From Iphione sp. A-MEVVRFRX5 (taxonomy: Eukaryota): DNA of 64,000 nt. The DNA lies in NCBI GenBank assembly GCA_976226885.1, contig OZ320316.1, positions 51,336,001 to 51,400,000 of the forward strand, read 5' to 3'. Positions within the stretch are counted from its first letter, which is position 1. The number at the start of each line of letters is the position of its first letter. Below, piece after piece: positions 8,126-45,234 of this stretch. The notes beneath the pieces were generated by a model that saw only the letters and a program-made list of their open reading frames with translations, was not told where the DNA came from and searched no databases. The translations under genes and the position numbers were made by a program.

Positions 8126-9616
8126 AGCACCTAATTTTCACATTTCCTTATAGATCAGACGAAATACACTCGCCGACGTATCACGTTGTGTTGTTGGTAA
8201 ATCAATAAATCTATCTAGACTTTTAAGTGACTCCCTAGTAGTTCATGGTAAATAAATATGTTACGCATTGTAGAATGTTTCCTATATATACTTATTGTAC
8301 CGCTATTTACGCCGCTGTCAAGTTAAATATCGCTAGTAAGTGCCGAGGCGCTACGCGGGGAGCCACAAGGTTGTTAAGGTTTGAGTTAGAACACGTAACG
8401 AGACGCCTACTACTAGGCGCATCTCAATGTTTGCAGTAAAAAGTGAAATAAAGTCTATCTTGCCAATTCATTGACCACTACCAAAAGGACTCGCAAGCCC
8501 CACCCTCTTACATTATATGAGCAGGCATGGCTTGCGCCTCTCGGATTGACACAGTAATCTTGTGCCCAATCACGCGGGTCTTGCCGACTGGAATTGCATT
8601 ACGTGAGGTTCCCTTCGGGTCGCAATCGGATCAGCCCGTGGCAGCGGCGAGTTGCTCTGGAGTGCGAGCCCCAACAACTGCTGCCGATGACCTAATTGCC
8701 CGACCCGCCTATGGCCTTTTATACCCAATTCGTCGCCAGGCTGGGCGGCGGATAATCCATGCATGAATAGGGTAAAGATGCTTGGTACAGATCCTTGTCT
8801 GCCTAAAGTAGGACTGCCTGCAGGGGTCGCCGGCACAGCCTGAACCGTTGCCATTTGTAATCGCCACCCGTTGTCGCCAGACATTGAGAGCACTTCACTC
8901 AGGAAATTGGCCTGAGTGTCTCCGGGCGGTTGTGAACGACCGGCCAATGGAAGTGGACGGGGAGCGATCGATGTGTACTGCCCCTTGCTCGAACACTGGG
9001 GTGACAGACGCGGAAACGAGCTGACACGGCAGGCGAAGACAACTGTCTACTCGAAGGAAGAGCAACTCATCAAAAGAAGTCTCATGTGCCGGTGAAATTG
9101 GCTTGTTGGGCTGCCATCGTTGTTCCCGTCACCGTTTGTTCTAGGGCATTTCCTCACAAGGTTTTTGGCTTTTACACTGGCCCGTCGAGGACCTCGGCTT
9201 TGGCCTGTATGAAGGATGTAGGGTAAGGATTAGGTGAGCGCGTGTAAATCAAGTAGGGAGAAATTGACCTGAGGCTTTGTTCTGTCGAGGCCGGAGACTC
9301 CCTCTCCATCTCGCACGCGTTTAAACGATGTGTTGTTCCTGTGTTGATTGATTCCTTCTCCCTTGTCCCTTCTCGGGTAGTCTCTTGAGGAGCGCTATCA
9401 TGTCCAATCATGTCTCACGCAACTCCCATAACGAAAAGCCTTTTCTTTCAAGATGATGAAACAATCTTTTTATAGCAATCGCAGAATAAAGAGCACGCAG
9501 AAACTTTCACCTCACGAGGAAATGCTCGCGTGCAGCGTCTTATTTTTTCTCTTGAAAACTTTAAAAAATATCATACTTCATGCCGCGCCGTACAACACCT
9601 TTTCATATTTTTGCAG

Positions 9617-9901
9617 GCGTTAAAGAGTACTGTCACGTGGACGCATTTAACGCCTCCTGCGGCCCCAACCACGTGATCCTCATGCGATCGGCTGTGTACG
9701 GTCGCATCGGCCTTGGGAAATGTGTGCGTCGTAACCTGGGTTACCTGGGCTGCACCATGGATGTGGTGCCCTACATGGACACGCGCTGCTCGGGCAGGTC
9801 ATCCTGCCGCGTGAACGTCGTCGACCTGACCAAGAAAGGCATGAAGCCGTGCCCAGAAGATGTTACCTCGCATCTACAGGCCAGCTACACCTGCGTAGAA
9901 G
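9617..9901 (+). CDS. Gene 1 SUEL-type lectin exon (285 nt, phase 1-1)
   Basis: Acceptor atatttttgcag|GC, donor GAA G|gtgagt. Encodes VKEYCHVDAFNASC...SAVYGRIGLGKC...CSGRSSC...PCPEDVTSHLQASYTCVE with 8 Cys and YGR, typical of the SUEL/Gal_Lectin fold. Confidence 0.93.
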
Positions 9902-12900
9902 GTGAGTCGTCCTGAACGAAAACAAAACCTATAATAATGCAATAGTAATGGCTAATTGTATATTGTATTTCGATAAACATTTGAATCGGGTTAGAACTAG
10001 ATTCAAGTGTGACATAGAAATCCTAAGTTAGATTGGGTTGTCAGCAGTAACATGTGATTATCTCAATGTGCTAGATATTTGAATGTCCAATTTATATGTA
10101 TGTAAATTGACATTTATGTGTGCAAAGTCTAATATACACATATAGATAGCAGCGTCCACTTTGGCTGTTTGACAAACGCAACTTGAGTAGGACTATATTC
10201 ATTATCTGGCGGTACCATGTTGTTTTATTTCTTTTCAAAGAGTTCTGCAGAAGAGAAACTAACGTAACTCTAGAGCGTGTTCGAAGAAATATCTAAAACA
10301 ATTTGCCAGATGACCGTCATGATTGCGTAATGAAGGCCACCCATATGGCCGAGAGAAAAACGTCCCTTGGCTCGATACCTGGTGTCGAAATCAGAGCTCG
10401 ATCATGTTGGATTTTTTTTGCATCTCCCACAAGGAGGTCAAGGGAAAATCAATAATTTCATGAATAACACACACGACAAAAATGCCTGGGGCTATATTGA
10501 TATAAAGGATTAATCTATTTCGCATCAGGGCCTGTGGGATTATGAAGGTGTGGCTTGTTGGGCTTTGGTCGTTAGGGACGTGATAAAAAAGACACAATGG
10601 GCCAGGCAGCACATGAATAGTTTAACAGCTGGTGGTTGTGCTTTGCACGTGTAGCGTGGTCGGAGCCAGACGGTCTACCTGATTAAGGTGTGGCTACAGT
10701 TGACGTCATGCTACGCACTCTGCCAACGACCAACAGCCTCGGGCGACGGGGCTGAACCCTTTCAGGTGGCCCCCTCACACTAAGGCGATAGGCCGAGAAT
10801 GGACCAATCACAGACGTGTCGCAGGTCACATGGCAAGGGACATTTGTCTCTGCACCCCTTGACTCGCACGTATACAGAGGCCTCCCGCTATGCGCCCAAT
10901 GGCTTTGTAGTGTCTGCACCCGCCCACTCCCAGCAATGTGCTGCTGGCAATACTAAACGCTTCCTTCAGTGATGCACGGGCAACTTCAAATTAAGTTTTA
11001 ACCATTCTCCTCCCTGCCCGTTTAAATGTGCCCGTCGTGTGTCGTCGCCCGTATAATCTATAAAGACTTCAGCACCTCAGAGGGTTGTACATGTACACCG
11101 ATTACCAACAGCGGCTCTATGACTAAGTAGTGTATGGAAATGTGCATTTAAGGCCAATCCATGTTAGTAGTATCAGACTTGGTTATGTGCGTCGAGTAAC
11201 TTCATTTTGTTACAATTAGTACATTTATGTACTACCTGCATCGTTCAAATAAGGCGAAAATGTGAAAAGCTTTAAAAACAAAACAAAAGAGATTCTGAAT
11301 ACGAATTCGCATGTGTATTAGAATTCGAGCATATCAATTTATACGGGATCCTTATTCGAAAATGTACAAGGAAATTGACGAAGGGGATGGTACAACTGTA
11401 TGAGTGGCTCTACGTGCCTGTAAACTTGTAGCCATTTACTGAAAGCTTGGTGCACAGGGAGTCTGCTTATGGCTTCTTAGGATTCACTGCAGTCAATGAG
11501 GAGTCCAGCGGCCTGGTTTGAATTACATCGGCGCCAACCAGTTAGAATGAAGGGGATGTCGTGCAGAGGCTTTTCCCATGGTTAGTGATTAGGGGCTATC
11601 ATGGCGGCGCCCTGCCCCCGTGGCCCTGTTTACCCAGCTCCTCCTTGAAGCCTTGGGCGGTGAGCAGATCAGGCAAGGGGAGAAGGAGGCCGCACGAGCA
11701 GCTCGCTGTCACTTTAGCAGTGCGCTTCCAATTAATCCGCCTTTGCCCGTGGCGTGACCCACGCGCCAGCACAACTCCCGTGTCTCTCAACCCACCGGGC
11801 TCCAAGCATCCTCCTCACAGGAAACGACGTGGCGCCAAGGCGCTCCACTGCCGGGGGCATCCAACTCTACACTAGCCATTGAACTCCAGTGCAAGCCATA
11901 GTTGCTGTCTCTATCCCTTCAAGGTTGAGGGGGCATCCAGTCGCTTTCGTCCTACACATGCGCCACCTTCACCCCGCTTCCCCCCACATGGCGTCGGTAT
12001 CCTTTGAAGCGGCGCCAGCTTCGCGACGGCCAAACAGGAGGGCTGGGTCGACCATGGCCTTTTTTGACACTGGCACACTTGCAGCAGAAACCAAATGGGC
12101 CGCGAACCTTTGTGGGCAAGGCAACCGCCAGGTATCCAATAATTACAACGCCCTCTGCCGTCCTTTTGACATGTTTCTCTGATGACACCAGATGTCAGTT
12201 CACTCACCGGGCTCATTTTCACCACGACAGGCCGGTTGGGTCTGATGACAAGGATTGAAAGGTTGACGTATCAGGAGAGCTCTTTTGCTGTTCTATTAAG
12301 GCCCACAGCAGTAACACATCTCTCTTCCTTTCTCACTGCTGTGATTCTTTCCATTGGTTGATGCGCACATACATGGCAGCTTGACGTTTTTTTGGGCAAT
12401 CTTTTCAAATGCTACAAGTTCCAACGGTAATCCATATACATTTCGAATCTATAGCCCCTAAGCCCTCGTCTGTCCTCATCGCTGACACCAATGAATTTAG
12501 AGTACGATACTTGACATGTCTGGATTTTATTGTAGTTCTTGGTCGCATGCGACTTCTATCCGGGAAAGACTGAATTAACCGAGTTTATTCATCGTATAAG
12601 AACGGGACAGCACTCACAAAACCTGTCATTATGTTTCAAGGGTATGCATCTCGAGTGGAGGCCCATTAGGCACGGCATCATTTCGCAAATTGTTAACTTC
12701 TGAAATCTTAAAACCTGAACCATCGAGCAGAGAAGACAAGTAGGGACATCTCACGCAATGCCAGTTGATGTATCCTTAGAATTCCAATAAGAATTGCACC
12801 AATCAAATGTGCACCTTGTATGAAATACGTGTACATTAGGCCAATATAGAAATCATCCATCAGCGCAGACCCATATAAGATGTTGCCTCACGAAAGAAAA

Positions 12901-15900
12901 CGACCATTGAGAATAAGTGAAAATGGAAGAAGGAGTAAGAATCGTCTGTCCTTTCCATGCGGCAGAGAGAAAGAGTATCAAATCATTGTCAAGATATAAA
13001 ATATAAATCTGGGAGGCTTTTTCCACAACTATGACTTTTTTCCTCTTAAGCAATCAAAAAAGTTGGTTTTCGAATATTTCTGTAAAGCAAATCCAGAATA
13101 CAACTGCAAAAATCAGAGTATGAACAATGATGATTACCTGGAGAAATGTATTAAAAATTGTGCAGGATGTTAGTTTGTACAGTTTTAAATCCATATTTCG
13201 TCTTGGACCAGAAGGCCGTTGGCTTCAACTGTTTGGGGATTGCACATAATCAAGAAACAACATGAGCTTCGTCTAGACTCAGACTAGAGTGAAAGCCTTT
13301 TACCAAAGTTAACACATGGCATGTACATGTACATGTATATGTAGTTTGTTGCGTTTTTTTTTTTTTTTGGGGGGGGGGGAATCATATGGTTGTTTGGACT
13401 ACATGTGTTCTTCTCTCTATATATATACACATGTATATACATATTCGTCGCCATGGTGTCTTAGGGGCAAACCGTCATATCAAATCAGTTGTTACTCGGG
13501 ATATATCAGCCCAACGGATAGTGGGCCTCCCTATTATTTTTTTACTTTTCGACCGGTCATTGCTGTAAGAGCAACGTAAAAATCTGAAATCAAAATCAGC
13601 TTGTAAAACAACCTAGTATATTCCTACTGAATTGTTTTACAGGAATTCAGAAATGTCAATCTTGAAAGAGCAAATGTGATTTTTTTATTCCTTTTTCAGA
13701 GACAATGTGCAATCTTTATCATTTTCTTTGGTCTCTTAAAATCCCTTGTTTTATCCATGTGTACTCATATCTATGTGTACTCTTATTTCCAATTTCTTTG
13801 TACATGGTCTTCCTTTACTACAAGACTTCCAAGCGTACCCTGTTCCCCAGAAAAAATCTGATTGATGATGATTCAAAACTTTTATGTGGCCATCTCTTCT
13901 TGCAGTGCGATCTGGCAGCCGCCGAGAATGCCAGCAGCAGAAGCGAATGGTGGTACAACAGACTCATGGTTTCCTGGCCTCGACGACGGCCGCCGACTAC
14001 AGCTACGGCAGTGCGCGTTGTCCCTGGTTGATCCAGGGTCAGCCGGGCCAGCGTGTCAACATCACACTCCACAACTTCGCTCGCTATCATCGACCGATGG
14101 ACAGCGGCGACGGTGGCGACGGCGGCGGCGGCGGTGGTACCATAGCAGGAAGTAGCGATCATATCCGGCCAGACGCCTGCTACGAGTTCGCGCTACTGCA
14201 GGACGGTGCCTCAAAGAAGAATATCGTCGGCTGCGTCGGCGAGGAGCGGAAGACGCATGTATATACATCCGTTGGAAACAGTGTGGAATTACACGTGTTG
14301 GAGCGTATCATTGCGAGCGACGCCGTCCACTTCATGATCGAATACAATGGTGAGTGACGTTCCTGTGCTTCCTTCAGATATGAATTGAATCCTTGTAAGA
14401 TCTGCCGACTTGTGATGACCAGATATCACTTTACCTAAGAATATAAATAATGCTAAGACTGCGAGTCTTCTCAGCAAATCCTCCCTCTAGTCATTTGGAA
14501 AAAAATATGTACGGGCAAAAAAAGCATGTGATTTAGCACCTGTTACACGCACAAACAACTACGCGGGGAATGCTTAACACCCGACGGAGCTTATTTTTGT
14601 GCCGTGTGGAATGATGAAAGATAAACCTGCCATCAAGGTAGTAAGGGCATTAACGTAGAAAAAACAATGTTCGTACTCCTTCTGTATTGAGAAGGGTTTT
14701 CCGAGGGAAAAGGAAGGCGGACAAGAAGCAGGTGCTCTTTTTTACTGCATTGCCTAATACGGGCTCAGTGCTGTATTCGCAATGTGCTCTGACACCGGAC
14801 GCAGCTGGGGCCGGAACACTACAGCAGCGCAATCTTCTTAGCGGTAAGGGAAGGTACTAACCGTAACTCGTGTTCGTAGGGAAGTATTCATTCTGCCCTC
14901 GTACGTCGTCTATTAAAATGACGGTCGCTGACTCATTCAAATTGACTTGCCGTCGAAGGTAGTCGTTCGGAGAAGGTGGGCCTAGTCGAGGGGAGTGGAA
15001 GGGGGAGGGGGAGTTTTACTGGCGAGTTCCATGAGTCTTGTTTCAAACCCGTCATCTTCGAGGCAGTTCCAAAATGCATTAGTCCTTTACCAGTTTCCTT
15101 ATCATGGGCATCCAGGAACCGCCGCACTTGCAAAACGCTACCGGATTACGTTTTGTAAGGGGGAGGCGGTTTAATCCAATATAGCGGCAGCGAAACATAC
15201 ATTACGTCGGCCCGCCTAGCCGCATCCGATGCCTCCTAATATCGTTACGTGATTCATATCGTGGCCGCTGTAGCGCGTGCCGGCTGCCTTTCTCTCCTCT
15301 CTCCCTCGCAGTGAGTGGCATCAAGAAACCTGACCGGGTGCCTGTGATGAGCGACGGTGGCTGTAATTCACGAAATTAGTGGGCACCCATTACCCGCCTG
15401 TCGTCCGCCGACTTACACACGATAAGACGGGCTCATACGCCATCAACGACGGATAGAGTTGGGCGACGGGTGGGCTATGTGTTTGAGGGGTTTGTGTGTG
15501 TGTGGGGGGGGGGGGAAGGGGGCTGAGTGCGGGGCTAGACGTGTTGAGGAGTGATGGCAAGACGCCCCGTCATGTTACCCGCATCAGGGATTAGCTCAGA
15601 GGCGCCTCTGGCGGTCGACGCGCTATCAGCAAAATGTGCATTAAACAAGGACGTCGCTTCACTGATCGCAATCGGGCCGCCTTCATTAAGCAAATTTCCA
15701 ACAAGAAAGCACGCATGGCTGCTGGTTCCTCCTTAAGGCCGACATAGAAATAATGCCCGCTTGGTACAACAGACGAGACCCTTCCACATTATCAGCCATC
15801 TAGCCAGCCAGGAAAGGGCTTGTTGGTAAAGTAAAGACTGAAAACGCCGCCGACACAGTCGTTCCCAATGGAAAGGTGAGCTGTCCACAGAATGTGTGCG

Positions 15901-18900
15901 GTGATATGGGATGACAGACGAGCGTGCCGGGATAAGGTGACCCCTGGTGACTTGCAGTTCGACAAAGATGTCCTTCAGGCACGCACAAAACGAGCATCAC
16001 GCTCTCGGCACGCGCCGACAGAGGATATGTCTGCAACGGATGGATGACACCGGGCACAGGGGTAGCTAGTCAAGAAAAAAAAACGAGGCATGGGTAGCAT
16101 GGTTGAAGGGACTGTGTCTGATGATCACTGAGGCAGCCGCAAAGAATGATAAAACATTGGTACTGGTTGTCAGTCAAATGCTAAGTAGAGATCAAAGCGA
16201 ATCTATTGTTCTTCTCCATCAGGATTCCGCCTGCCTCGCTGAATGCGATATTATCTGATAGCCAGCTTTTATTGCCCTTAAATGGCTCCCGTGTCACGCT
16301 CAAAAAGAAAACCAGGTATCCATTGAGTGGTAGTTCTCGTAGAGTCACATAGATATTCAGTCAGATCTAATGTATCAGAAGGAAGAATTTAGTCTTAATA
16401 ATCATGATAAATATGTGCAATTGTAGTTTCGCTAGACACTATCAAAATACGGAATTTTCCTCTTTAAGATAAGATAATAGACTATCATAATAGACTACCC
16501 ACCAGTTACAATATGCGGTTTCCTCTGATTATTGCACTGTAATGGCTTGTTTTAACCACCAGGGAGGGGTCAGTTGAGTAGAACAATCTGTCACGTGAGA
16601 CTTTATTTTATATAAAGTGATAGGTGATAACTACCAGATAACATATATAACATAATATCATTTATTTACATCTTTTTAAAATATAACAACTAATTCACTT
16701 TTCATTACTTCTGTATGTACAATTCAGGCTTTGAATACCTCCCTCAAGAGGCGAAACGTTGGATGATGAATAAATTTATCTCTTATATATCTTATCTTAT
16801 AGGCCTTCAATTTTAGTGTAAAGGTAATACAAGTAACATATACATGTAAGCCCCCCTAACAATGATGTACAGACATTTTTATGGTCCAGTCTTTGAATTT
16901 TTCCTTTTGTCGAAATTACGTCCATTTGTAAACATAGGTCATTTTAGTGCCTTTTAGAAAACGTAGGCACTATCAATATTGGTATGTAATTGTCTTCTCT
17001 GCCTTCCAAGAGCGTGTATGTATCTCAGTTTCTAATTAAGAGAGAAGAGAGAACTGTTCGTTTAATAAATGGCAAAGTCAAGTGGAATAGTCAATATATC
17101 GCTAAGACATATGAGTTGCCGCTCTTGCTTGGTGTGTGTAATATGTTCGTTCCTCTATTATCGCCACTCTGTGCTTAATGGCAAACCTGCCGCCCTGCTA
17201 CTAGCATCTGACACGCACTTATCTCGTTTTTTCCCGTTACAGTCATAGGTTGTCCCACGCTTCGGGCGCCGCCTGGTGGGACTATCCGGCATGCGGGGTC
17301 CCACGTGACGGTGCGTTGTAACCAGACGGAAGAGGTCTGGTACTTGACATGCCGCGACAACCGATGGGTCGGTGAGCAGGGCAACTGTACCCTAGGTAGG
17401 ACGTCAGATTTTACTACTGCTGCCGCAGGTTTGCTATGCTTCTCTTTGGTCTATACTAAACTTTACTATGTCACACCGTGCAATTTCGGTGCTCTCTTCT
17501 CTGGTAGAAAAAAAGTGTCTTCTACGCATTCTAGTATCAGATATTGTGGAATGTTCGGTAATCTCTTGGAAATTTTGTAAAAAGTTCGACTTACACATAC
17601 CGAGAGTAACGCTTCCTTTATATTAAAAGAACTAGTATATAAATCACCTTTTGAAGTATGGAATTTCAGCTACCCTCTCATTGTTTAATCCCCGTTTTAA
17701 CAACGTATTCTGGTGCGTAACAGGATCCATATCGCTTTCAAAGCGCCATCAGACCGAGGCAAGAGAAATGTGAGATAAGATCAAAGATAGGTCCTTACCT
17801 CGTGAATTTAATGAAATTAAATCGCCTTGAAGCGACATCTCCATTTACAAAACTGCAGACACTAAAGGTAATATGCTGAGTGCAATATGCGATATGAGTA
17901 ACATGTTTAGGTAGGCTACAGGGCAGGACACATTTAGTTTCTACTCATAAGGAACTAAAATATGGACAATCTAATACATGACATAATTTAGTATTCCCTT
18001 TTGACTGGTATGGCTGTGAGATGTCTGTACCATTCCGTCACATTTAGCGTAATTCTAGTCCATCCCGCGTGCCTTATTCTAATCTCCCTCTGATGTTAAC
18101 TTCATAACTAATGTCTTTACGTAAGACATACGACACCGTCTGCTACGGTACAGATTGTACAGAAATAATCCTCATTGCAAAGTGCCCGTGGCTTTGTATG
18201 GCCACTGAATGCATCTAGACAGTACGTGGAGAGCAAACCTAAACCAGATCCATGTTGGCGCTCCACATCCATCCGTCATGGCAGTGTAAATAGATCCTTT
18301 CTTAGACAGCCTAGGGGCCTGCTAGTAATTAGTTCCACCGTCAGGGGAACCCGACTCCGAATTGACCTGTCTATCACAGAAGAATCGTCATCTCTGGGTT
18401 CACATTACGCCACAACAGGACGTTACTCGGACCTCTCCTCTGGGTGCACAGACTTCTGACGTTGGCAGGACGGGCGGGACTTCGCCAGTACATAATCCTG
18501 ACCTCCTTTCTCCCCTATTGGTTTGTTTTTCGGTGTTATCTGCACACCCATTGATGAGAGTGTTCTCCTCTACTCCGCTTAATTTGTGGCCGTGAAATAC
18601 ATGTAGTGGCCTTCAACATTCACGCGTTATAATACTCTCTACACTCATTAAAAACAAGCATACAGAGTCAACTCAGAATTAAGACGACAAATGGGACCAG
18701 ACAAAGTTGCCCTTAACTGTGAGTTCCCCTCTTATCCGAACTATATCATAAAAATTATACTATGGGGATCAACTACACTTGCCATTAATCCTGAATTGCC
18801 CTCTTAGTTTAATTACCCACAAGGTGAGTTCCTACTGTAGGTTCAATTTGGTTATTTTCAATTTAGGCAGTTTACAGTCACTGATAATCCAAGTAGGCTA

Positions 18901-24900: not shown

Positions 24901-27900
24901 CGCCTCTTCCCCTTACCAAGCCGCCGGCAAACTGGGCCTCAAGAAGACGCTTGTTTGAAATTCATGACTCCGCCTGCCTCCAAACGCTCTCATAATATTG
25001 ACCAACCGGCTGGCCTGACAGTAGACACATATATATCACTCAAGTGGGAAAAAGTGACCAAAATTCGGACCGTGCGCCACAGCTAAATCTAGTTTCCGGA
25101 AGATCTGTAGGCCCCATCATAATTCACTCTCTTCAACAAGAGGACAGTTAATCAAAGTTATGCAAGTTCTATTAATGTGTGTTTAATATCTTGGGGGTTA
25201 TATATATCAACACTAATACTATCATTAGCATGTATCACTAGGCCAGATTAGCCAAAATTAGAGGAATCTTCCAAAGGAAGGAATTTCTAAACTTGCAGAT
25301 TAGAATGAACTTTAAGCAACATTGGAATTCTCTTTGATAATTATTTCAGAAAGGAATCATACGTTATTTTGAAGCAAATCGCTTCTTTCCCAAGACCTTG
25401 ACATGTTTTTGGGTATACCACATTGTCAATTATTTCAATTTGAATACCAACTCCCACTTTATATATACATGTACATGTGTATATATATATGCATCTCATA
25501 TGTTAAGTGTAAATCAGAAACACATTTTCTTCTTTACTGCACCCCATCAAAATCATAATATTTGTGCATTCAAGCATGGATTGTAATGATGAGCCCAACT
25601 GTATTATCTATCCCACTATCTCATTAAAAGCATACACTGCTTTAGAACATGTAGCTATTTAGAGTCATTTAAATTAATGTTTCTACATAAAGAAGGGTAT
25701 GGTATAAGAAGAATCAACAGTTCATCTGCTGTGCCGAAATGCCATTCCGTAGCCAAAAAAGTATGAACGTATTGACTACAAATATACATGTATTACATTG
25801 CTTACCTCTCCTTTTTCGATCAAGTAGCTACGTATGGTCAAGAAATATCACTCATATATGTGCCATATATGATCTTTATCCTATATTTGTACTGGACATC
25901 ATATTTTCGAATCATAAATCTCCACAATAAAAATAAATAGGGTCTTCTGTGTTTATCAAACTCGGAGACGGGGATGCGAGCGTTTCCTGGCTTAGGGGTT
26001 ACTAGCACTCCAAGCGCTAAAAGTGATTTTTGCTAGGAACACCTACATTTGATTGCTAATATCCTGTTTTTACCATCGCCCAAGTCACAAAAAAATGACA
26101 ATTTTCCACTGAACTGGCTAATATTGGTTTCATCTTTATGTAACGACTGCATATGGCCATTACTTTCGCCTTTGCAATCAAAACCATTGGATATCGCAAT
26201 GTACACAAGCGAAAAACTGTTAGGACATCAAGAATCCAATAGGTGGCAGGGGTGTCGCCATGAACGCCCACGCTCCTAGCGGTAGTATCTGGCATTTAAT
26301 CATAATGTTCCCGTTTCAGGCATTCTCGTCGTCGTCGCCATTGGTGTGGCACTGGGTGTGTTTTTCGGAGGACTTTTGTTATTCGGAATAAATATCTACA
26401 TGAAAAGGTAAGTTCTGATTAAAAGAGAAGTTCAACTAGATTGCGTTGATAAGTACACAAATACCACGAACGTGCATGTATGAAGGGGATGCCCCTGAAA
26501 GCATACACGGGGCATAATCTAGAAAAAATGAAGTGAAATTACAAATCTGTAATGGGATCTTGATGATAAACAACCATCTCAACCTATTTACAGTCATATA
26601 GTCACATTCTTTAAACATTTTCGTCTAATTTAGATTTACCCCTAGGACGTTACATAATCGCACCAACTAGGTGCATTTTAACATTAATCTTTTCGGTGAA
26701 TATGTAATATGATTGACTCTTGCCTATTGTACATACTATCTAAATGTATTCATTTCATCTCATACATCAACCCATTCTCACAATAATAGTCAGTGTGAAT
26801 GGTGTAATGAACTCCTCTGTACGAAAACAGCCGTGGTAATGGCTAACGGACGGAAATAAATTGTTTCTTATCTTATCTTATCTTATCTTATTTTGTTCTC
26901 AATCTTTTTTTCGGGTATGATTGCTATATTCTTTCAGAATGGATCCCATAATTTGAAAACCTTGTGTGCATGAAAACGATACGACGAATGAATTATGACC
27001 AAAGTCCTTTGTTTGCAAGAAAATGTGGGAGTTTGGCAATTAGTGCGTGATCAAGAGGGGATTATATATATATATACTTATAATAAATTTGTAACAAAAG
27101 ATGTTTGGCTTAGATCTTGTATGAAAAATGTTTTTCATCTTTCAAAATGCAGTGGAGACCCCCGTAGGAAACCATGCTTCGAACTGGACAATTTTGGCCC
27201 TTCGTACCATTTGGTCGCATCAGGAGTAATCTTAATATTGATTTAAATGTGTTCTGGTCTTGGCCCCTTTCCTGCTTTGAGTTCACTCATATGTGGATCA
27301 TTCTTTTGAAATAGATCTATATAATTGCGGGGGCTGGGTGGGATTGCTTAGGTAGCTGTGTCTGTGCACGTGCGTTGGTGCTGCTTAAACCGTATCAGAC
27401 ATGCTCCACAAAAAGTCACATTTATATGAGACAATGATATCAGTGACAAAAATATCCTCCCTCCCGCCCCCATGCACGGTAGCATCTTAGATCTTAGTTG
27501 TTGAACACTCCGCTAGATGGAAGCACAGGTTACTGTCAGGTCTTGTTATGATTCATGGTATGTAGGGTCGATGCGTCGCCACACCTCTTCGGTGTCATAA
27601 CCCTGCGTCCGCCACAAGAGAATAAGTAGCTTTAATCTGTATCTATGTGAAATATGATAGGCCTATCTTGGCCTATGTCTATCAGGGACGTCTTCTGCAG
27701 AAAAATAAATAATTGATTGATGACAGGTGGTTCGGGTCGCTGATAACTGGCACGGTCCAAGACACATCAGAAAGGTATGAGGTAGAGGGTTGGGCGGATC
27801 GCCGGTGGCTGTGCACAGCTGTGATCGCTCTGATCATTCCTTGCAGCCAATGAAAAAAAACGCCCATTGTTCTCATCTTTACTGACCAAACTACCGGTCT

Positions 27901-28517
27901 TTTTATTCTTTGTATGGACCAGATGATGAAGCGACAGTCAGTGATACTATATTGTACTGGCAGGTTGGGGAGACTGGCTGGTCTCTTTTTTAACGTTGTA
28001 TACAGTCTACGTATAGAAGATTGTGGTATAATGGTGAGCTTAAATGCAGTTGCTTCTATTGCCTTGCAGATCGCGTCGGTGTACCTCGCCACCCAGCACG
28101 AGGACGATTGAGGAGGTAACTGGTAGTGACAAGTTGATGGGACCTCCGCCGCCCATCGAGGCCGGATACACAACTGAGGTGCTGATGAAAACCCGCGGCA
28201 GCACAGGTGGTGGCGGCGGCGGTCTTCCGCCGTCAATGGCGATGCCGCAGCAGGGCGGCGGTGTCGACGATGTGGACGTCATGAGCGTTCGCGAGTACAA
28301 GAGCCGCAATGGATCCGAGCTGGCCCATGTGCACATCCAGGGCCCCTACGGCCGTTCGGGCACCTTCCCTTCCTCTTTCACGTCAAGAGGGAACGGGGGT
28401 GGGGGAGGCAACGGCGGCGGTGGTGGCGGAGGTGGTGGTGGCGGCGGCGGCAGTAGTGGTGGTGGGACGCTGGGACGACCGCCATCGCATGTCTATGAAA
28501 GTCCGAAGTTCTCATGA
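9617..28517 (+). CDS. Gene 1 (5'-partial): SUEL lectin / CUB-like / sushi-like / TM receptor; join(9617-9901,13906-14349,17243-17395,24822-24875,26320-26407,28070-28517), about 490 aa without the missing signal-peptide exon
   Basis: Six exons with canonical AG/GT ends whose phases chain without frameshift (1-1, 1-1, 1-1, 1-1, 1-2, 2-stop). They give an ordered ectodomain-TM-tail protein, and the first two exons are clearly paralogous to gene 2 exons. Confidence 0.9.
13906..14349 (+). CDS. Gene 1 CUB-like exon (444 nt, phase 1-1)
   Basis: Acceptor catctcttcttgcag|TG, donor AAT G|gtgagt. Encodes GFLAS...CPWLIQGQPGQRVNITLHNF...CYEF...VYTS...FMIEYN, the CUB hallmark CxWxI..PGQxxxxTL..F. Confidence 0.9.
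16769..16799 (+). repeat. AATAAA followed by a short (TCTTA)n tail, possible 3' end of a non-LTR retroposon relic
   Basis: gaataaatttatctcttatatatcttatcttat; same arrangement as 26855-26890. Confidence 0.35.
17243..17395 (+). CDS. Gene 1 sushi/CCP-like exon (153 nt, phase 1-1)
   Basis: Acceptor gttttttcccgttacag|TC, donor CTA G|gtagga. Encodes VIGCPTLRAPPGGTIRHAGSHVTVRCNQTEEVWYLTCRDNRWVGEQGNCTL: 4 Cys with the C..W....C ending of CCP-like modules. Confidence 0.85.
24822..24875 (+). CDS. Gene 1 juxtamembrane stalk micro-exon (54 nt, phase 1-1)
   Basis: Strong acceptor ttgtgtttactttccttgtag|CT and donor TAC G|gtaagt. Open reading AGTWNIGTIFGSTTSFPY joins in frame to the TM exon as FPY-GILVVV. 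Confidence 0.8.
26320..26407 (+). CDS. Gene 1 transmembrane exon (88 nt, phase 1-2)
   Basis: Acceptor gttcccgtttcag|GC, donor AAA AG|gtaagt. Encodes GILVVVAIGVALGVFFGGLLLFGINIYMK, followed after splicing by the basic stop-transfer RSRR. Confidence 0.9.
26855..26890 (+). repeat. AATAAA followed by (TCTTA)5, probable 3' tail of a LINE/SINE relic
   Basis: aataaattgtt then TCTTA x5 at 26866-26890. A polyA signal directly before a short tandem tail is typical of non-LTR element 3' ends; no coding remnant was recognised. Confidence 0.5.
28070..28517 (+). CDS. Gene 1 terminal exon, cytoplasmic tail A (Gly/Pro-rich, ends HVYESPKFS*)
   Basis: Acceptor cttctattgccttgcag|A; AG+A gives Arg in frame with the 28044-28517 ORF. 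Low-complexity tail with Tyr residues; TGA at 28515-28517. Confidence 0.85.
28395..28466 (+). repeat. Imperfect (GGN)n repeat encoding the poly-Gly tract of tail A
   Basis: gggggtgggggaggcaacggcggcggtggtggcggaggtggtggtggcggcggcggcagtagtggtggtggg read directly. Confidence 0.85.
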
Positions 28518-29117
28518 TGGTTGCAAACCGGAACCCTCAGCCAGCCGAAGGAGACGCTACCGCTCAACAAGAGGGAGACCACTGGCGCCACGGTGTGTGG
28601 ACGCCCTCTACGCGAGAGTTTTTCCTCCTCTAGTGAGACGGAGGAGGCGCCAGAGAACCAAGACAAATTGCTCTATGAAAACGTGCCAGAGACAACTAGG
28701 ACGACTGATGACAGTGAACGTAGTAATAAATGCACCTCTGCGGACCGGCGTTTCCGGTCCGACCCGCCACCGCCAGTGACCTGTACAACACAGCACAAGA
28801 TCAACAGGCAATTGCGTGATCGTGACGTCACAGACGTCTGGGCCCCATCCGCCGGTAACAAAGGTGACCCCCAGGCATGGCCGACAGCTTCAAGTACGCC
28901 TACAATCTACGCCAACGTGCGCCGGGCTTCAGGTGACGGCCGGGCCGATCGATGTGCCGTGAGAGCGAGCCCCTCGCCGCCCGCAGCAAACACGGCAGAC
29001 AAAGCCTGCCGGGCAGACGCCATCAATAGCTGGGCCGTCGGCCAAGCCGACGATGGCGACGGCGGCGAGTACGAGCTGCTCAAAGAGAATGTTTATACGA
29101 ATCAATCCGATGTTTGA
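28518..29117 (+). CDS. In-frame post-stop extension of gene 1 (tail B, 199 codons plus stop) with LLYENV, TIYANV, EYELL, VYTNQ and C-terminal SDV
   Basis: Same frame as tail A, starts at the codon after the TGA, has no stop until 29115-29117, and carries clustered signalling motifs. How it is expressed is unresolved. Confidence 0.65.
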   Translation, partial: WLQTGTLSQPKETLPLNKRETTGATVCGRPLRESFSSSSETEEAPENQDKLLYENVPETTRTTDDSERSNKCTSADRRFRSDPPPPVTCTTQHKINRQLRDRDVTDVWAPSAGNKGDPQAWPTASSTPTIYANVRRASGDGRADRCAVRASPSPPAANTADKACRADAINSWAVGQADDGDGGEYELLKENVYTNQSDV

Positions 29118-29390
29118 CTTTTGCTCTTGGTGTTGTGGTAGCCCGGATATGATAAAAGAGGTGCGGACGGCAGAGCAGCCATAGTCGTTGTGAGCAGCTC
29201 ACCGGAGTCTTTGCCAAGGCATTCCCGTAATGAAAGAGCAACTCGAACAAGGCGCACTGCCCCAGCCCCTATGTTTCCCCAGGGACAGTGGCCACTCGCA
29301 AACATCACATCGAGTTACTCATAATAGCGTCTGGTTCGGCGATGGCCGTAACATAATTACACTGGACTCTGGGAAATCAAGCCACCAGGA

Positions 29391-29396
29391 AATAAA
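29391..29396 (+). terminator. Candidate polyadenylation signal for gene 1
   Basis: First AATAAA I found downstream of the tail B stop (about 270 nt); another lies at 30184-30189. Usage not demonstrated. Confidence 0.35.
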
Positions 29397-32311
29397 AGCT
29401 TTACTGACCACCTGGTACAAGATACGTGAGAGCTAGTATCGACCTGCTCCACGCTCTACGGAGCTGCTCCCGTGCCCATATCTCACCACACAATATGCTC
29501 TGGATGTGGCCTCCGTAGCCTCCGGCTCATAACCTGCTGACGTTGAGGTCGATATACTGCAGAATGTGTAGGCTATCGTTCAATGAGGGATTCCGGTCAA
29601 ATACAGCAGTCGCCCCCTCCCCCTTTACTTTTACCCATGTTTCAGTCTATTTGTCTCCACGCTATTACTGTGCATATACCCGCACCTTATCAATCACCTC
29701 ACACAGCTTTAAGTGTGTCAACATTGTCAACAGACAATCTAAGCGTGCATCAGTATTCAACTGAGAGAGTTGATCTACAACAGGAGTAAATCTGAGCAGT
29801 GGGTTACTTGATGAGTCTGCACAAATTATATTTTTACTGCCGTATCTCAGTATTACGCACTTGTTGGTGACGTACATGTACTTTATAGGCCGAGGAACAA
29901 ATGGTTGTCGTGAGCCGCAGCTGCGAACAGTCGGGAAATGCCACAATCTTCATTGATCTGCTTAGAATGGATCCTGCCAGCCGTCCCGACCGGCGACGAG
30001 CAGTTCCCCGCAGATTCAATGGGTTTGAACGTCTTGTGATGTTAACGTTCCAGTCGGTCGCTCCGCCTCACAGATATGAAGCACTATTTTATCTCCGAAC
30101 TATAATGTCAGCCGCTGAGGCGCTCCCTGTGACTTGAAACGAGTTGCTCGTCGTGAGTCACTCTCCACATCTGTTCCTTTGTAAATAAAAGAAAATTGGT
30201 TTTGCTCGGAGACGTAAGTGACACATCATATATGAAATATCGTTCCTCTCACAGTGCACGACGAGGGATTTTTCTCAAGGCGTGCCAGACCTCAACACAT
30301 TGTACAGTTTACAGGAAATAAATCGAACATATAAAGCTTGTGAAAGAATGTCTACCACATAATGTTTCCGTTCCTATAGAAAACCAATGTCTATACAATG
30401 AAAAACAATACAAATATCCTTACATGACCTCTGTACTATCGATCATTCATAACTTCAGCAGAAAGTCGTTTGAGTTTTATCATTCCTTCTTTATTTAATT
30501 GGCAACAATAAATATCTTTTGCTTTTTTAATAAACTTGCTCACTGCAGATTCTAAACATGCTCCTTCCAACATTATGAATTGGGATCTAGACATACATCA
30601 CCTATTATTTTCTTTTGGTTTTTGTTTCAGTGGAATCAAATTCAACAGTCTTTGCCAATAAAAATTTTACTCCGTGTCACTTTTTGTCTCCTAATAATCA
30701 AATTCGGTTTCATACTTCCAAATTCTCATGTATCCATGCTTGTATTTCTTCTATCTACACTTATTTAAGGTGGCGAAACACCTGGATGATAGAATTCTTA
30801 TGAACGACACATTAGATTCATGATGATGCATATGACGTAGAAGTTGATAGGACAAACAGTCGCCCTTACCAAATTCCCCGTGACTGTAATTTAGAGGGAC
30901 AAATTGATTTAATAATTATGTTAAAGGGGTTGCTTATGCCGAGTTCCTCGTTTCAAAATCTGAAAGGTAAACATTGCATTACTTTCTCCTTCAATACTTC
31001 ACCTATCCGAACTGGGTCAGTTGAACAAAGGGGTTCACGAACACTTGAAGGGAATCCAGTCATCCTGCATTAAGTGCTGGGATTAGCCTTGCGTTACTCC
31101 CCTCAACATATCTGCTAGTTATATCTGCCCTGTTTTGATGCAGAATTCTGTCACACATTAAGAAGGCTATTATGATTAACTCCCCAAAAACGACCACTAA
31201 ACCATATTCCTCCTAAGAAACCCCACAACATACAAATAACTCATGGAGAATGGCACGACCTTCATATCGAACTTTATTCTGTTTGAGGGAGTAAAATTCC
31301 GTCCATGACAACCTTCTAACCTAAAGAGGATCCGCTGAAATGGGCTGCACTCGGATAGCAATGGTCCATTGTATATTACCATAATTATAAAACTCTCGAC
31401 CTGATTTTTTTATTTTAATACCTATACTGTTGACAGTTGTTGTGGCCCAGTAGAAACCTAAGACAAGTGGAGTAGAAAAATGCCAAACATTGAAGTTAAA
31501 AATCAAATAAAGCTAGTCTGGACATAATATAGATGAGTGTGCCTGTTTGTTATTAGGAAAATCCACATTTAAGGCTGTTGACAACTTTGATTGTCTAGAA
31601 GGAACCGATTTAAGACCACTGGTCGAAAATATACAAAAAAATATGTGGTTGTAAGTTACAAGCAAACGCACTACTCTAAAAGATCCTACAGTAAGAATAC
31701 ATGTGCAGTAAACGCGGTATAAAATCTCTCCCAAAGCAACGTGATATTCACTGTGCGGTAGTGGGACATAATAAAAACCTCTCTATTCATAGCCGTAGAT
31801 TAATTTCGCTGGTTGCGGCCGATCTAAAGAAGATTATGTGCCAACACCTGCTTCCATTCAATGCTGTATACATCTCAAGAATAACCTGCTCACTGGCGGC
31901 ACAAAATCACCACGAGTGAGCTGTGATGTTTCCCATTCTTGTAATAGATGGCCATCATAAAAACAATTTAAACGTAAATATAGAATTGATTTATGATGTT
32001 ACATAAGGAGGATGCAGACAAAACGGGAGAAACGGGAGAAATTCCCAAGAAATTCAATGACTCATTAACTGGTGTGTGTGCAGCGAAAGTTTGAAGCCAT
32101 TGACAATTATGTCACGAACCTTGACATCCAAACTAATTAGCGTGTGCCCAGTCTGACCGTGGGGCTAAATGGCTCGCTTGCTTATACTTGCCGACTAATG
32201 GATAAAGTGGATGCGACGTGAGCTGATCATAATCGGGAATATGGATCAGGACAAAATACGATCTGCCAGAGGCAGTGAGTAATCCGTGAGAGTGAAGAAA
32301 CGCACGGACGA

Positions 32312-32440
32312 GGGCGGGGCATTGTCAGTTGACCGTTGACCCATCCAGCTGCCCCTTCCTCTCCGCTAGAGGCCACCAACAACAGCCGGCTTGACCCCGC
32401 CTGACCCAGCCTGACCCTCGAGCCGCCCTGCACCTGACCC
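32312..32440. promoter_or_regulatory. Cluster of six nuclear-receptor-type half-sites (TGACCC/TGACCG) with DR1 and tandem DR4 spacing, plus a GC box
   Basis: TGACCG-t-TGACCC (32330-32342), TGACCC at 32392, 32402, 32412 and 32435, GGGCGGGG at 32312-32319. Function is inferred. Confidence 0.3.
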
Positions 32441-35400
32441 GTGCGCGGCCTTTCGCCGTCACAACACGAGAAGGCCATTTCGGACATTGGGGTCAAATTT
32501 CTAATCCTCGCGATGAGGTTCTTTCTATCAGACGAGGGTGACGGTCCACCTTTGTCCTGGTCACTGCTCAGAGCAGCTGGGCAAGCTGAGTTATTCCGAC
32601 TGGAAGCAGTTGAGACTGCTTGACCTAAGAAGACTGAGGCCGGCCCCCAAAAAAAACGTTCCCTTGGACAATCCTACCCTACAGCACTCTGCCCATACAG
32701 CATTCACTCCTACGGCTGCCATGCATCAGATCATCAATCACACACATCACGTATCTGTCGAACAAGTATCTCCTCACGCGCCACCGAGAAGCGCGTGCGG
32801 CTGCGGCAATCGTCGTCAGCCCAGACTTGCGGGCTATAAAGATCAAAATGAAATTTTAATTTTTTTTCATATTCGAGCTCTTGGGAGCGAGGAAGGCTAT
32901 TATCATCGTTGCGATTGATCTTACGAACGAATCGAAATGGCGCAAGTGCGCATGCGCACGTCGCTCCAGGGAGCCGTTTGCCACCCCGTCGTCACGGACA
33001 CTAATTTGTATTAGGTAGATTTTAAAATTGATAAGGCGTCGCGCCGATGGTGATGAGGAAAATGAAAAAGCATTAACGCCCTCATTACCATGAACCCCAT
33101 TCGGGCTGAAAAGCTCATTATAACTTATCTCATTTGCAATTTGATATCAACCTGGAGTGGCTCTTGACGCGAAGCCTTACTATACTAGAATGACGGGGCT
33201 ACGGGCGGTGGTGGGGAGAACGTGCCTTCCGGAAGAGGACAACTAGGCGTCACCGACGGCTGTGAGATTCCCTTTGTCACATCACAACGTTATAGCCATC
33301 TAGTTCAAAGCTCGGGTGAGTCGACAGAGGGCGAATTCCGTTTACACTGCGTGTCTTCTGAAGCGGTCAGCGAGACAATGGTGTACCCTGAGGCCTGTCA
33401 AACGACCTGCCATCTATTGGCGGTAGCGGATGGATGGAGCGTTTGTTTTAGTGGTTGTCTAAAGGAAATGATGGAGGTGCCGGTCTCTCTGAGAGGGTTA
33501 CAGGGTGTAGAGTTCAATCGAAGTAGGGACGGGAATCGCGCGGCAGGGTCAGCAATATGAGTAGACGCTGGCTGTCCACGAGGATGAGGAAGTTACAGAT
33601 GGCAGGACCTTACGGCCTGAGAGGCAGCAGCAGGTTCATGAGAACGACCAGCGAGCAGGTCATCCTCAGCATAATCATCGGCCCGGTGCGGGGAGCAGCT
33701 CGGCCTAATGCCATCAGAGCTAATCGGGCCGTGAGTGAAGAACATCGGCGGCCTCCTGCGTGCGTCCATCATCAAAGCTGGCGGCCCGGCGCGGACATCC
33801 GACGCGCCGTGCGGCCACCAACAAATAGAGGCTTTGATGATGAGTAATGACTCATTCACTCACAGCGAGCCACTCACGGAGCACTCACTGGAAGAGGTGC
33901 TCATGTTCAAAATGCTATCCTCTGTCAGCCCCGCTCACCAAGGCCACACGCTTTAAAAAATATGAATAGCGAGACTGGTCAACCCACCGCTTTCCTTGTA
34001 AATCTACAAGAGATACCATCTTTTTACTTGCGGGTCACGAAGGTCTAGATAGCCTTCGGTTTCTTATGCGTCTGAGCTACATCAACTCCACTAAGCCCTG
34101 CCATTTCTTAATTCTTACCATGAGACCAATTGCTATCTAATGTCATTTCCTTGCACTCTGGTATCAGACTTTAGCGTCCTCCTGCAACCGTAAATGTTTA
34201 ATGTACACATTAGTTGATGCTTTTGATCTTCAGATATGTCTACGCACCGATACGTCTGTGGGCCGCTCCCCAAGACCTCTCCAAGCAGACATTCTACCCA
34301 TATTTCCTCGCATAGCATCCATCCCAAACTCTAACCCACGCCTCCCTTCTCACCACGCGTCCACTATCACCACAATAGCGGGGGACCTGATGTGCTCGTC
34401 GCTGTAATCAAATAAGACACCATGACGGGGACTCGTCGACTGCCCGACATGTGATACCGGAGACGTCGGCCGCTTCCATTCCCCCGCGGCGGACGCCCGG
34501 CACGCCCTCCTGCCTGAAGACGGCGTCTCATCTCCTCCTGCCTGCCGCCCTCCCTGGAGCAAACTCCGATGGAACCGCCGCCATTTGAAACAGAGAACGG
34601 CCTCTGTGCGCCATGTCAGTAAGACTACCTTGTGCAGAATGAAGGCTTCGCTCTGGTGTCGTTGGCGCATGATCTCGCCGTTGGGCTTCCATTTCTCTGC
34701 TTTGGTGTGGACAACGCCATGCCATTCCTTCAGCGCCTCCCGCAAGAGCTGAAAGAATGGATTCGCCCCTTTGTGTTAGGCCCGATTTTATCCCACTATC
34801 ACCTTAGAATAAAAGACCGCAGTATAACCTGTCTGGGAAACGATAAACATGTATACTCATGTACGCATTTTTGTTCTTAACTTTAGTAGTTCTCATCAAA
34901 TTCGTGTAAAAAATCACATCCGGCATCAATCTGTATTGATAAACAACTGCATAATTACCAAGACAACAACAGTAATGAATAAGAACCATTTTGTTACAGC
35001 AATAACGTGCATGCCCGAGTTGAAATGATTGTATGAAGAATGATGCTCGAACAATAGCCAGGTCTGGGTTCTAGCCATCATCATCACTTCTACCCATCTC
35101 TACCAGTACTCAAACAAGGATATTTGACTTGTCACATTCAGAATATCCAAAGACAATCCTCCTTTGGCGCTGTCCGGGAGTCAATTGAGATTATTAGCAA
35201 GATACAGGCACTAACCACTCAGTTTAGCTGATTTAAAATGAGTAATTGTCCAATTTTTCCATTCATTCGTTTCTTCCCTGCCTGTATATAACTTCATATC
35301 ACTGACTCTACAGTCCAGGAAAACAAGTCTTGACATAGGTTTGAGAAAATGTACTTTATGTACATAATTATCAGGGGAAGTAAAAAGTAAAAAAAATAAA

Positions 35401-44749: not shown

Positions 44750-45234
44750 TCTACGGGTCCTGTGACGTAGGTGGCAGCACTGTGCCTTCTTTCAATCAGC
44801 AGCAGCCGTGGCGGCGGCGGTGGTGGCGGCAGCGGTGGCGATGGTGGTGGTAGTCGGAGTCGGAGGAGGAGGAGGAATAGGAGGAGAAGGCTTCGGTTAG
44901 GGTGCGGCCCGGCGCGTCATTTCTCCGCGTGCGTGCATCAGCTGCGGACAACCCCGGACGCGCGGAGCGTGAGGCGTTTACACGGGCTGGCTACGTCTGG
45001 TTAGTGTCACGAGTAAGGATCTCAACCCCCCTACCCCTCCTGTAAAAAGTGGCCAGTGTAAACAATTACGCTGTCTACTGGCAACTCTGGTCACTTCAAC
45101 TCGTTCAAGAGAGTACGGCTGTGACTCGCGGATCGTTATTAAGGTGTGTGTAGCATCAACGGACTCGCAGGCATAGGGACATTTTCTTCTGGAACTTCCC
45201 GAGTCAGTTGTCACAGCGACTGCCTGGACCCAGC
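44750..45234 (+). promoter_or_regulatory. CpG-rich promoter / 5' leader of gene 2 with (GGC/GGT)n and (GGA)n repeats
   Basis: GC/CpG-rich stretch with a CRE-like tgacgta near 44763 and trinucleotide repeats at 44808-44890, directly upstream of the ATG at 45235. No TATA box seen. Confidence 0.5.

Follow-up and report, generated by a model that had tools for sequence, protein, structure and literature searches.

The receptor locus

A receptor gene, here called gene 1, lies within a 64,000-nucleotide (nt) stretch of the genome of Iphione sp. A-MEVVRFRX5 (assembly GCA_976226885.1, contig OZ320316.1, positions 51,336,001 to 51,400,000 of the forward strand), and the subject of this analysis is what stands behind its stop codon. 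The whole stretch is referred to as the window, and coordinates are counted from its first letter unless a relative is named. The product of gene 1 is predicted to be a type I membrane receptor with a SUEL lectin, a CUB-like and a sushi-like part, one membrane span and a conserved cytoplasmic tail (tail A). Past the first stop the reading frame remains open for a further stretch (tail B), which on sequence evidence is open, non-random, coding-like and rich in signalling motifs. A longer form of the receptor is probably made by way of this frame, either by readthrough of the stop codon or by alternative splicing. The finding is real, but it is a candidate only.

The features of the locus are collected in Table 1. 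On the extracellular side, the lectin exon of gene 1 is 45% identical to an exon at 54152-54439 belonging to gene 2, a second receptor gene of the window, and the CUB-like exon is paralogous to 61770-62153 of the same gene (33% identity); the Pfam CUB matches of the two (E 0.003 in gene 1, 0.013 in gene 2) both fall short of the Pfam cut-off. The sushi-like exon at 17243-17396 found no match to Pfam Sushi. On the cytoplasmic side, a single hydrophobic exon (26320-26407) is followed by the basic sequence KRSRRC, and the splice phases agree: the first base of the last exon (28070) completes the codon split at the donor of the transmembrane exon, giving a junction that reads ...INIYMK-R-SRRC..., a normal basic stop-transfer sequence. 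The poly-glycine insertion of tail A looks like an in-frame repeat expansion within a cytoplasmic tail that is otherwise strongly conserved.

Table 1. Features of gene 1, its second frame and neighbouring sequence, in window coordinates.
Feature	Position	Strand	Remarks
SUEL-lectin exon, gene 1	9610..9903 (approximate in-frame limits)	+	Pfam PF02140, E 1.6e-7, passes cut-off
CUB-like exon, gene 1	13929..14348 (approximate limits)	+	weak Pfam CUB match, E 0.003, under cut-off
Sushi-like exon, four cysteines	17243..17396	+	phase 1 at both ends; assigned by Cys/Trp spacing only
Transmembrane exon (...ILVVVAIGVALGVFFGGLLLFGINIYMK)	26320..26407	+	perfect donor AG/GTAAGT, two bases into a codon
Last-exon coding part, tail A	28070..28514	+	acceptor cag/A, matching phase; ends HVYESPKFS
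GGN microsatellite, encoding a poly-Gly insertion of ~26 residues in tail A	28386..28465	+	missing from all four relatives
First stop TGA	28515..28517	+	same position in 5/5 sequences; TGA in 3/3 with DNA
Post-stop conserved element, ~22 nt (TG.YTG....CCRGAACC..)	28518..28539	+	identity 15/22 to L001, 13/22 to L002
Tail B, 199 open in-frame codons	28518..29114	+	hydrophilic, without Met
Acceptor-like site (GAGTTTTTCCTCCTCTAG)	28618..28633	+	exon start 28634, same phase as 28070
LLYENV	28668..28685	+	YxNV; also fits ITIM pattern
AATAAA inside tail B	28725..28730	+	208 nt past first stop; possible poly(A) signal for a short tail-A mRNA
TIYANV	28902..28919	+	YxNV; also fits ITSM pattern
C-terminal block EYELLKENVYTNQSDV	29067..29114	+	YxxL, YxN, S-x-V end
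Second stop TGA	29115..29117	+	codon score negative in all frames beyond
AATAAA	29391..29396	+	274 nt past second stop
Gene 2, diverged SUEL-lectin/CUB receptor paralogue	starts ~54.1 kb	same as gene 1	SUEL PF02140, E 1.8e-10

An ancient stop codon

The sequence at the end of tail A is ...CCG AAG TTC TCA TGA TGG TTG CAA..., with the TGA at 28515-28517, precisely as quoted in the original prediction, which had been made from the letters of the window and had called for a comparison of this stop with related loci. A search with tail A recovered four relatives at the level of open reading frames (ORFs; P0001-P0004) from ENA and Logan assemblies, 57-66% identical to tail A over aligned columns, with 37 positions invariant across the five sequences. 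All four terminate ...H[LV]YESP[KT]FS, as gene 1 does, and the stop is accordingly kept in all five sequences. At the two relative loci that were read as DNA (L001 and L002) the stop is TGA, in a setting, TTCTCA-TGA-TG, common to both and to the window. The first stop is, on this comparison, ancestral, and the canonical protein is predicted to end at YESPKFS. Because the stop is real and old, its position being shared by four distant relatives and TGA itself by two DNA loci, it can be put down neither to an error of assembly nor to a nonsense allele that is private or recent.

Conservation does not end abruptly at the stop. Four-fold degenerate sites of tail A are 24-44% identical (window against L001 24%, L001 against L002 28%), which amounts to saturation, and the lineages of the window, L001 and L002 are far apart. 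As TGA and some 22 nt behind it have been kept although the four-fold sites are saturated, something immediately behind the stop is under selection. The similarity of the window to both loci disappears past ~22-24 nt.

A second coding-like frame

Recomputation confirmed that 199 in-frame codons stand open between the first TGA and the second. The chance of such a run is 0.0013 under mononucleotide shuffling, 0.0013-0.003 under a dinucleotide Markov model with local composition, and falls to between 7e-5 and 3e-4 if the composition is taken from the window's other GC-rich, non-coding parts. Stop-to-stop frames of at least 199 codons are scarce, at two among the 6018 in the window, and the other one contains the CUB exon of gene 2.

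Codon usage provides a second line of evidence. A codon log-odds score was trained on the seven confident exons of the window, with the scores of the exons themselves obtained leave-one-out. Read in frame 0, tail B scores +0.18 bit per codon, whereas its two remaining frames give -0.12 and -0.28; the confirmed exons score 0.0-0.48 bit per codon with the same frame pattern, and past the second stop the score drops to between -0.27 and -0.40 in all three frames. Tail B ranks sixth among the ~150 open frames of at least 80 codons in the window, the top three places being held by confirmed exons. The original prediction had judged four tyrosine motifs plus a PDZ ligand at the second stop unlikely in a neutral 3' untranslated region (3'UTR); the frame is indeed non-random, exon-like in its codon usage and motif-bearing.

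Some other routes to translation can be set aside. Coding on the opposite strand is ruled out by stops in every reverse frame of the region (4, 4 and 9), and tail B has no Met, and therefore no independent AUG start, so that a separately initiated ORF is likewise ruled out. Descent of tail B from tail A by duplication and divergence was hinted at by a pairwise BLASTP match (E 0.02), a hint that profile comparison left unsupported (probability 0.9%). Tail B matched no Pfam family, a scan of JGI metagenomes with the tail A profile gave no homologue of tail B, and a search of the rest of the window for copies or a paralogous tail returned only the noise of glycine runs.

Putative docking motifs in the second tail

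Tail B contains exactly four tyrosines, at its residues 53, 131, 185 and 193. Besides those of LLYENV and TIYANV, there is one in EYELL (Tyr at 29070) and one in VYTNQ (Tyr at 29094), and the tail ends NQSDV; the motif positions and the C-terminus previously described were all correct on recomputation. The consensus of the immunoreceptor tyrosine-based inhibition motif (ITIM) is (I/V/L/S)xYxx(L/V/I), that of the switch motif (ITSM) TxYxx(V/I), whilst YxN(V) is the consensus of Grb2-type SH2 domains. An ITIM/ITSM label had been proposed for motifs of the tail; it fits LLYENV and TIYANV, and fails for the other two tyrosines. Both patterns are short, and the sequences that fit them match YxN as well. 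Three of the four tyrosines are YxN and two of these YxNV, with a further ENVY nearby, and YxN(V) describes the recurrence better than ITIM/ITSM. The ITIM/ITSM reading, with its suggestion that the tail recruits phosphatases, exceeds the data; the recurrent motif is of the Grb2 type.

The recurrence is itself improbable by chance. When the residues of tail B are shuffled, two YxNV appear with P = 5e-5 and three YxN with P = 6e-4; a motif-agnostic version, which asks for any two tyrosines with the same residues at +2 and +3, gives P = 0.026. The C-terminus adds to this. A class I PDZ ligand is a free C-terminus of the form S/T-x-hydrophobic, and the ...QSDV end fits this pattern at the second stop, as had been noticed; an S-x-V end has a chance of 0.022. 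It would exist only if tail B is translated, and is best regarded as a predicted ligand. In that event the tyrosines of tail B may be phosphorylated and, together with the C-terminus, may bind SH2 or PDZ proteins.

Known proteins of similar design include PAG/Cbp, SIT, LIME, SCIMP and the ITIM/ITSM receptors, whose cytoplasmic tails, like tail B, are disordered and contain several tyrosine motifs (YxN, YxxL/V). They differ in that there is no sequence homology, and tail B resembles them in motif and composition alone. The nearest neighbours of tail B by protein language model are likewise tyrosine-phosphorylated adaptor tails (PAG, SCIMP, LIME1, SIT) and proteins with immunoreceptor tyrosine-based activation motifs; this likeness is a lead only, because its scores (0.67-0.77) lie below the line of reliability.

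Beyond the stop in relatives

How the frame behaves in relatives is informative to differing degrees. L001 has 58 post-stop codons, open in frame 0 and in frame +1, and L002 has 16; both contigs then break off in (ACC/GCC)n microsatellites (L001 1940-1984, L002 683-702). A frame-0 coding signature between the two stops can be sought across these species only over the ~24 nt that align to L001 and L002. The ACC of the repeats falls in the threonine frame of the post-stop ORF; the window is free of such a repeat, yet threonine is the commonest residue of tail B.

The most telling relative is P0003, on a 1.7-Mb contig of ENA sample ERZ26222911. There the tail A ORF occupies 10001-10390, and the next called gene, at 10475-10984, shares both strand and frame with it, encodes 169 amino acids and is the longest complete call within 20 kb listed. 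By gene-call coordinates only, the distance from stop to stop is 198 codons, as against 200 in the window. This relative may therefore keep an in-frame ORF of near-equal length.

Routes to the second tail

If tail B is translated, ribosomes must reach it, and two routes are open to serious consideration. We give readthrough of the UGA a probability of about 0.4. Under this reading, the normal product of gene 1 would end ...HVYESPKFS at the ancestral UGA; in a minority of ribosomes a near-cognate tRNA, expected to bring in Trp, Cys or Arg, would decode the UGA, and translation would go on in frame for 199 codons, adding a disordered tail that offers phosphotyrosine docking sites of the YxN(V) type and closes with S-D-V. 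The same mRNA would thus yield two receptors, one short and one long, that differ in their intracellular partners. In favour of this route, frame 0 is already open at the codon that directly follows the stop, something that readthrough alone requires, and readthrough gives a role to the conserved TGA and to the 22 nt behind it. Both the translation of tail B and its access by readthrough rather than splicing are matters that we infer.

Extensions produced by known readthrough are typically disordered, motif-rich and poorly conserved among orthologues (PMC4999894), and they diverge faster than the first ORF (PMC5100048). When the criteria for readthrough genes of Jungreis et al. (PMC5100048) are applied, the locus has a stop that is kept in relatives, and AUG initiation, coding on the reverse strand and selenocysteine are set aside, the last because neither a selenocysteine insertion sequence (SECIS) nor any other Rfam match occurs in 27500-32500 at E<=5. 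Splicing, on the same criteria, is still in contention, and neither a leaky context nor a stimulatory 3' RNA structure was found.

A number of observations weigh against readthrough, and they are of three kinds. Firstly, there is the site itself. We know of no work that recognises UGA-U as a leaky context, and the stop stands in UGA-UGG in the window and in UGA-UGU and UGA-UGC in the relatives, rather than in UGA-C or UGA-CUAG. When the sequence behind the stop was folded and compared with shuffled versions, no significant RNA structure emerged for either the window or L001 (z -0.95 to +1.6), and the AATAAA at 28725 could end the mRNA within tail B. Abundant readthrough has, moreover, been reported for Pancrustacea only (PMC5100048), and the appeal of the original prediction to Drosophila was for this reason not apt. 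Secondly, there is the evidence from relatives. The 58 post-stop codons of L001 fail to align to tail B past ~24 nt; the openness of L001 and L002 proves little because (ACC)n repeats keep every frame open; and the P0003 locus is known from gene calls alone. An exhaustive phmmer scan of 1.84e9 representatives, and a word-based search at E<=10, both returned no homologue of tail B.

Thirdly, there is the question of chance. The length of the ORF is by itself no proof, and other evidence is needed beside it, because one must consider multiple testing over thousands of gene ends (over an estimated ~2000, length alone would give ~0.1-1 such case by chance), because the region is T-poor, with an AT skew of +0.2 to +0.39 that lowers the frequency of stops, and because the neighbouring +1 frame is open too, for 164 codons (28285-28776) that run from the last part of tail A into the first part of tail B. 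This 164-codon frame looks like a by-product of the GC-rich, T-poor composition, because it is Arg-rich with a negative codon score. The codon evidence is likewise less striking once composition is taken into account: conditioned on its own dinucleotides and on being open, tail B stands only 1.6 standard deviations above expectation, a marginal result (p = 0.054) that lends support to coding without deciding the matter.

The other route to tail B is alternative splicing, which we consider unlikely, though a serious contender. The donor of the transmembrane exon (26407/26408) would join an acceptor at 28633/28634 instead of the regular one at 28069/28070, and tail B would replace tail A. The site reads TTTTTCCTCCTCTAG/T, and its phase fits both the transmembrane-exon donor and the regular acceptor, an agreement that itself speaks against readthrough; 13 of the 16 nt before the AG are pyrimidines. 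The product would run ...INIYMK-S-ETEEAPENQDKLLYENV..., with a predicted junction INIYMK/SETEEAPENQDK. A rarer version would remove the stop in a short in-frame intron, for example by joining a weak donor, AA/GTTCTC at 28507/28508, to 28634; this internal donor is a poor match to the consensus, and no donor of good quality lies around the stop. Splicing would account just as well for the coding-like properties of tail B, and outside Pancrustacea alternative terminal exons are much more frequent than readthrough (PMC5100048); our weighting of the explanations takes in this much lower prior for readthrough.

Against this route, acceptor-like sites as strong as the one at 28633/28634 turn up 0.5-0.8 times per kb, so that the probability of meeting one with matching phase within 600 nt is ~0.1-0.15, and the pyrimidines are simply those of a serine run (TCC TCC TCT AGT). 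The tail so attached would meet the membrane with an acidic sequence (K, then SETEEAPE), as opposed to the basic KRSRRC of tail A, and no comparable acceptor is evident in the 174 nt of L001 past its stop. In both splice versions the frame shared by tails A and B would be coincidence: splicing needs neither this shared frame nor the 39 open spacer codons, for which we estimate a joint chance of ~0.1, and at the P0003 locus, too, the ORF is in frame, with a stop-to-stop length that is almost equal. Splicing also leaves the conserved TGA and the 22-nt element without explanation. Receptors with an alternative 3' terminal exon or a distal acceptor do resemble the present case in joining one ectodomain and membrane span to two signalling tails, and a phase-matched acceptor is present here; they differ in that their second tail need be neither in frame nor contiguous with the first stop, whereas tail B is both, apparently in a distant relative too. 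The original prediction had spoken of a recoding-controlled switch. Its ancient stop and its non-random, motif-bearing frame have held, whilst the readthrough mechanism it named does not follow, given that the acceptor offers a splicing route.

It may also be that tail B is untranslated today, a reading that we again consider unlikely. On one version, the frame coded for protein until recently, for example as an alternative last exon in this fast-evolving family of receptors, and has since been retired; on the other, it stands open by chance in a 3'UTR that is rich in GC and poor in T. In either case the conserved 22 nt would be an ordinary regulatory site of the 3'UTR. Much of what weighs against readthrough points this way: the lack of any homologue in the searches, and of an alignment to L001 past 24 nt; the AATAAA 208 nt past the first stop; the T-poor composition, under which fewer stops are expected, with the +1 frame open for 164 codons as well; and the p of only 0.054 in the conditioned codon test. 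A genome-wide scan would, in addition, be expected to produce a p of ~0.002 occasionally. Against this, three features of tail B do not depend on the length of the ORF, namely the recurrence of YxN/YxNV, the frame-specific codon score and the S-x-V end, and a same-frame ORF of similar length in P0003 would have to be coincidence. A relic still open over 199 codons must, furthermore, be very young, yet the stop that precedes it is ancient.

An antizyme-like +1 frameshift at UCA-UGA-U, a site resembling the UCC-UGA-U of antizyme, would read D-G-C-K-P-E-P... and stay open for 87 codons, to 28779, without entering tail B; the post-stop element does read D-x-C-x-P-E-P in the window (28515-28545), L001 (1808-1835) and L002 (655-680), with core differences at third codon positions only, but with three sequences and about five codons such a pattern would arise by chance with a probability of ~0.1, the +1 frame is rich in Arg and has a codon score of -0.06 to -0.12, no downstream structure was found, and tail B and the frame-0 ORF of P0003 are left unexplained, all of which makes it highly improbable. 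All the remaining explanations, this one included, are very improbable even when taken together.

Comparison with known readthrough and significance

Were tail B reached by readthrough, the nearest proven parallel would be the large form of myelin protein zero (L-MPZ), with an extension of about 63 residues, likewise a single-pass type I membrane protein that gains a longer cytoplasmic tail when the normal stop is translated through. It differs in that it has been proven experimentally, is conserved in tetrapods and has the shorter extension, whereas the case of gene 1 involves 199 residues behind UGA-U and is known from sequence alone. L-MPZ is a minor readthrough isoform of vertebrate P0 that carries extra regulatory sites (PMC7070019). 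The nearest class is that of the conserved readthrough genes of flies and mosquitoes. These PhyloCSF candidates of Drosophila and Anopheles share with gene 1 a conserved stop, a long in-frame second ORF with no downstream AUG, and an extension that is disordered, motif-rich and fast-diverging (PMC5100048, PMC4999894, PMC3840789); they are defined by a codon-substitution signature over many genomes after the exclusion of splicing, and tail B is defined by neither.

If the long form is made, one receptor gene would give two proteins with the same sugar-binding exterior and different interior wiring, the long form adding three Grb2-type YxN sites and a PDZ-type end to tail A. What this would mean depends on the route. 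If readthrough is true, the case would be among very few long conserved readthrough extensions outside insects and crustaceans, in a cell-surface receptor and with a stop context (UGA-U plus the 22-nt element) that would not be called leaky under current rules; the intracellular wiring of the receptor would be set at the ribosome, and the locus would offer a testable case for how readthrough is specified. The fullest form of this proposal is a programmed UGA readthrough outside Pancrustacea, kept across distant annelid lineages, driven by a new element of ~22 nt after UGA-U rather than by UGA-C/CUAG, and adding a 199-residue phosphotyrosine/PDZ tail; in all its parts at once we regard it as doubtful. 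If splicing is true, the result would be an ordinary though neat tail-swap. By either route, an annotation that ends at the first TGA would miss a probable isoform.

Other features of the window

Gene 2 continues beyond the window, its 3' part, including the tail, falling past the window end. Between the two receptor genes, at 44790-44900, lies a low-complexity stretch of glycine runs (GGN) similar to that of tail A, with no other similarity around it. The 9 kb separating the sushi-like and transmembrane exons of gene 1 may contain optional phase-1 exons or none; the end of the former and the start of the latter are both in phase 1 (G/GC, encoding Gly), and a direct joining of the two, with no stalk exon between them, is possible.

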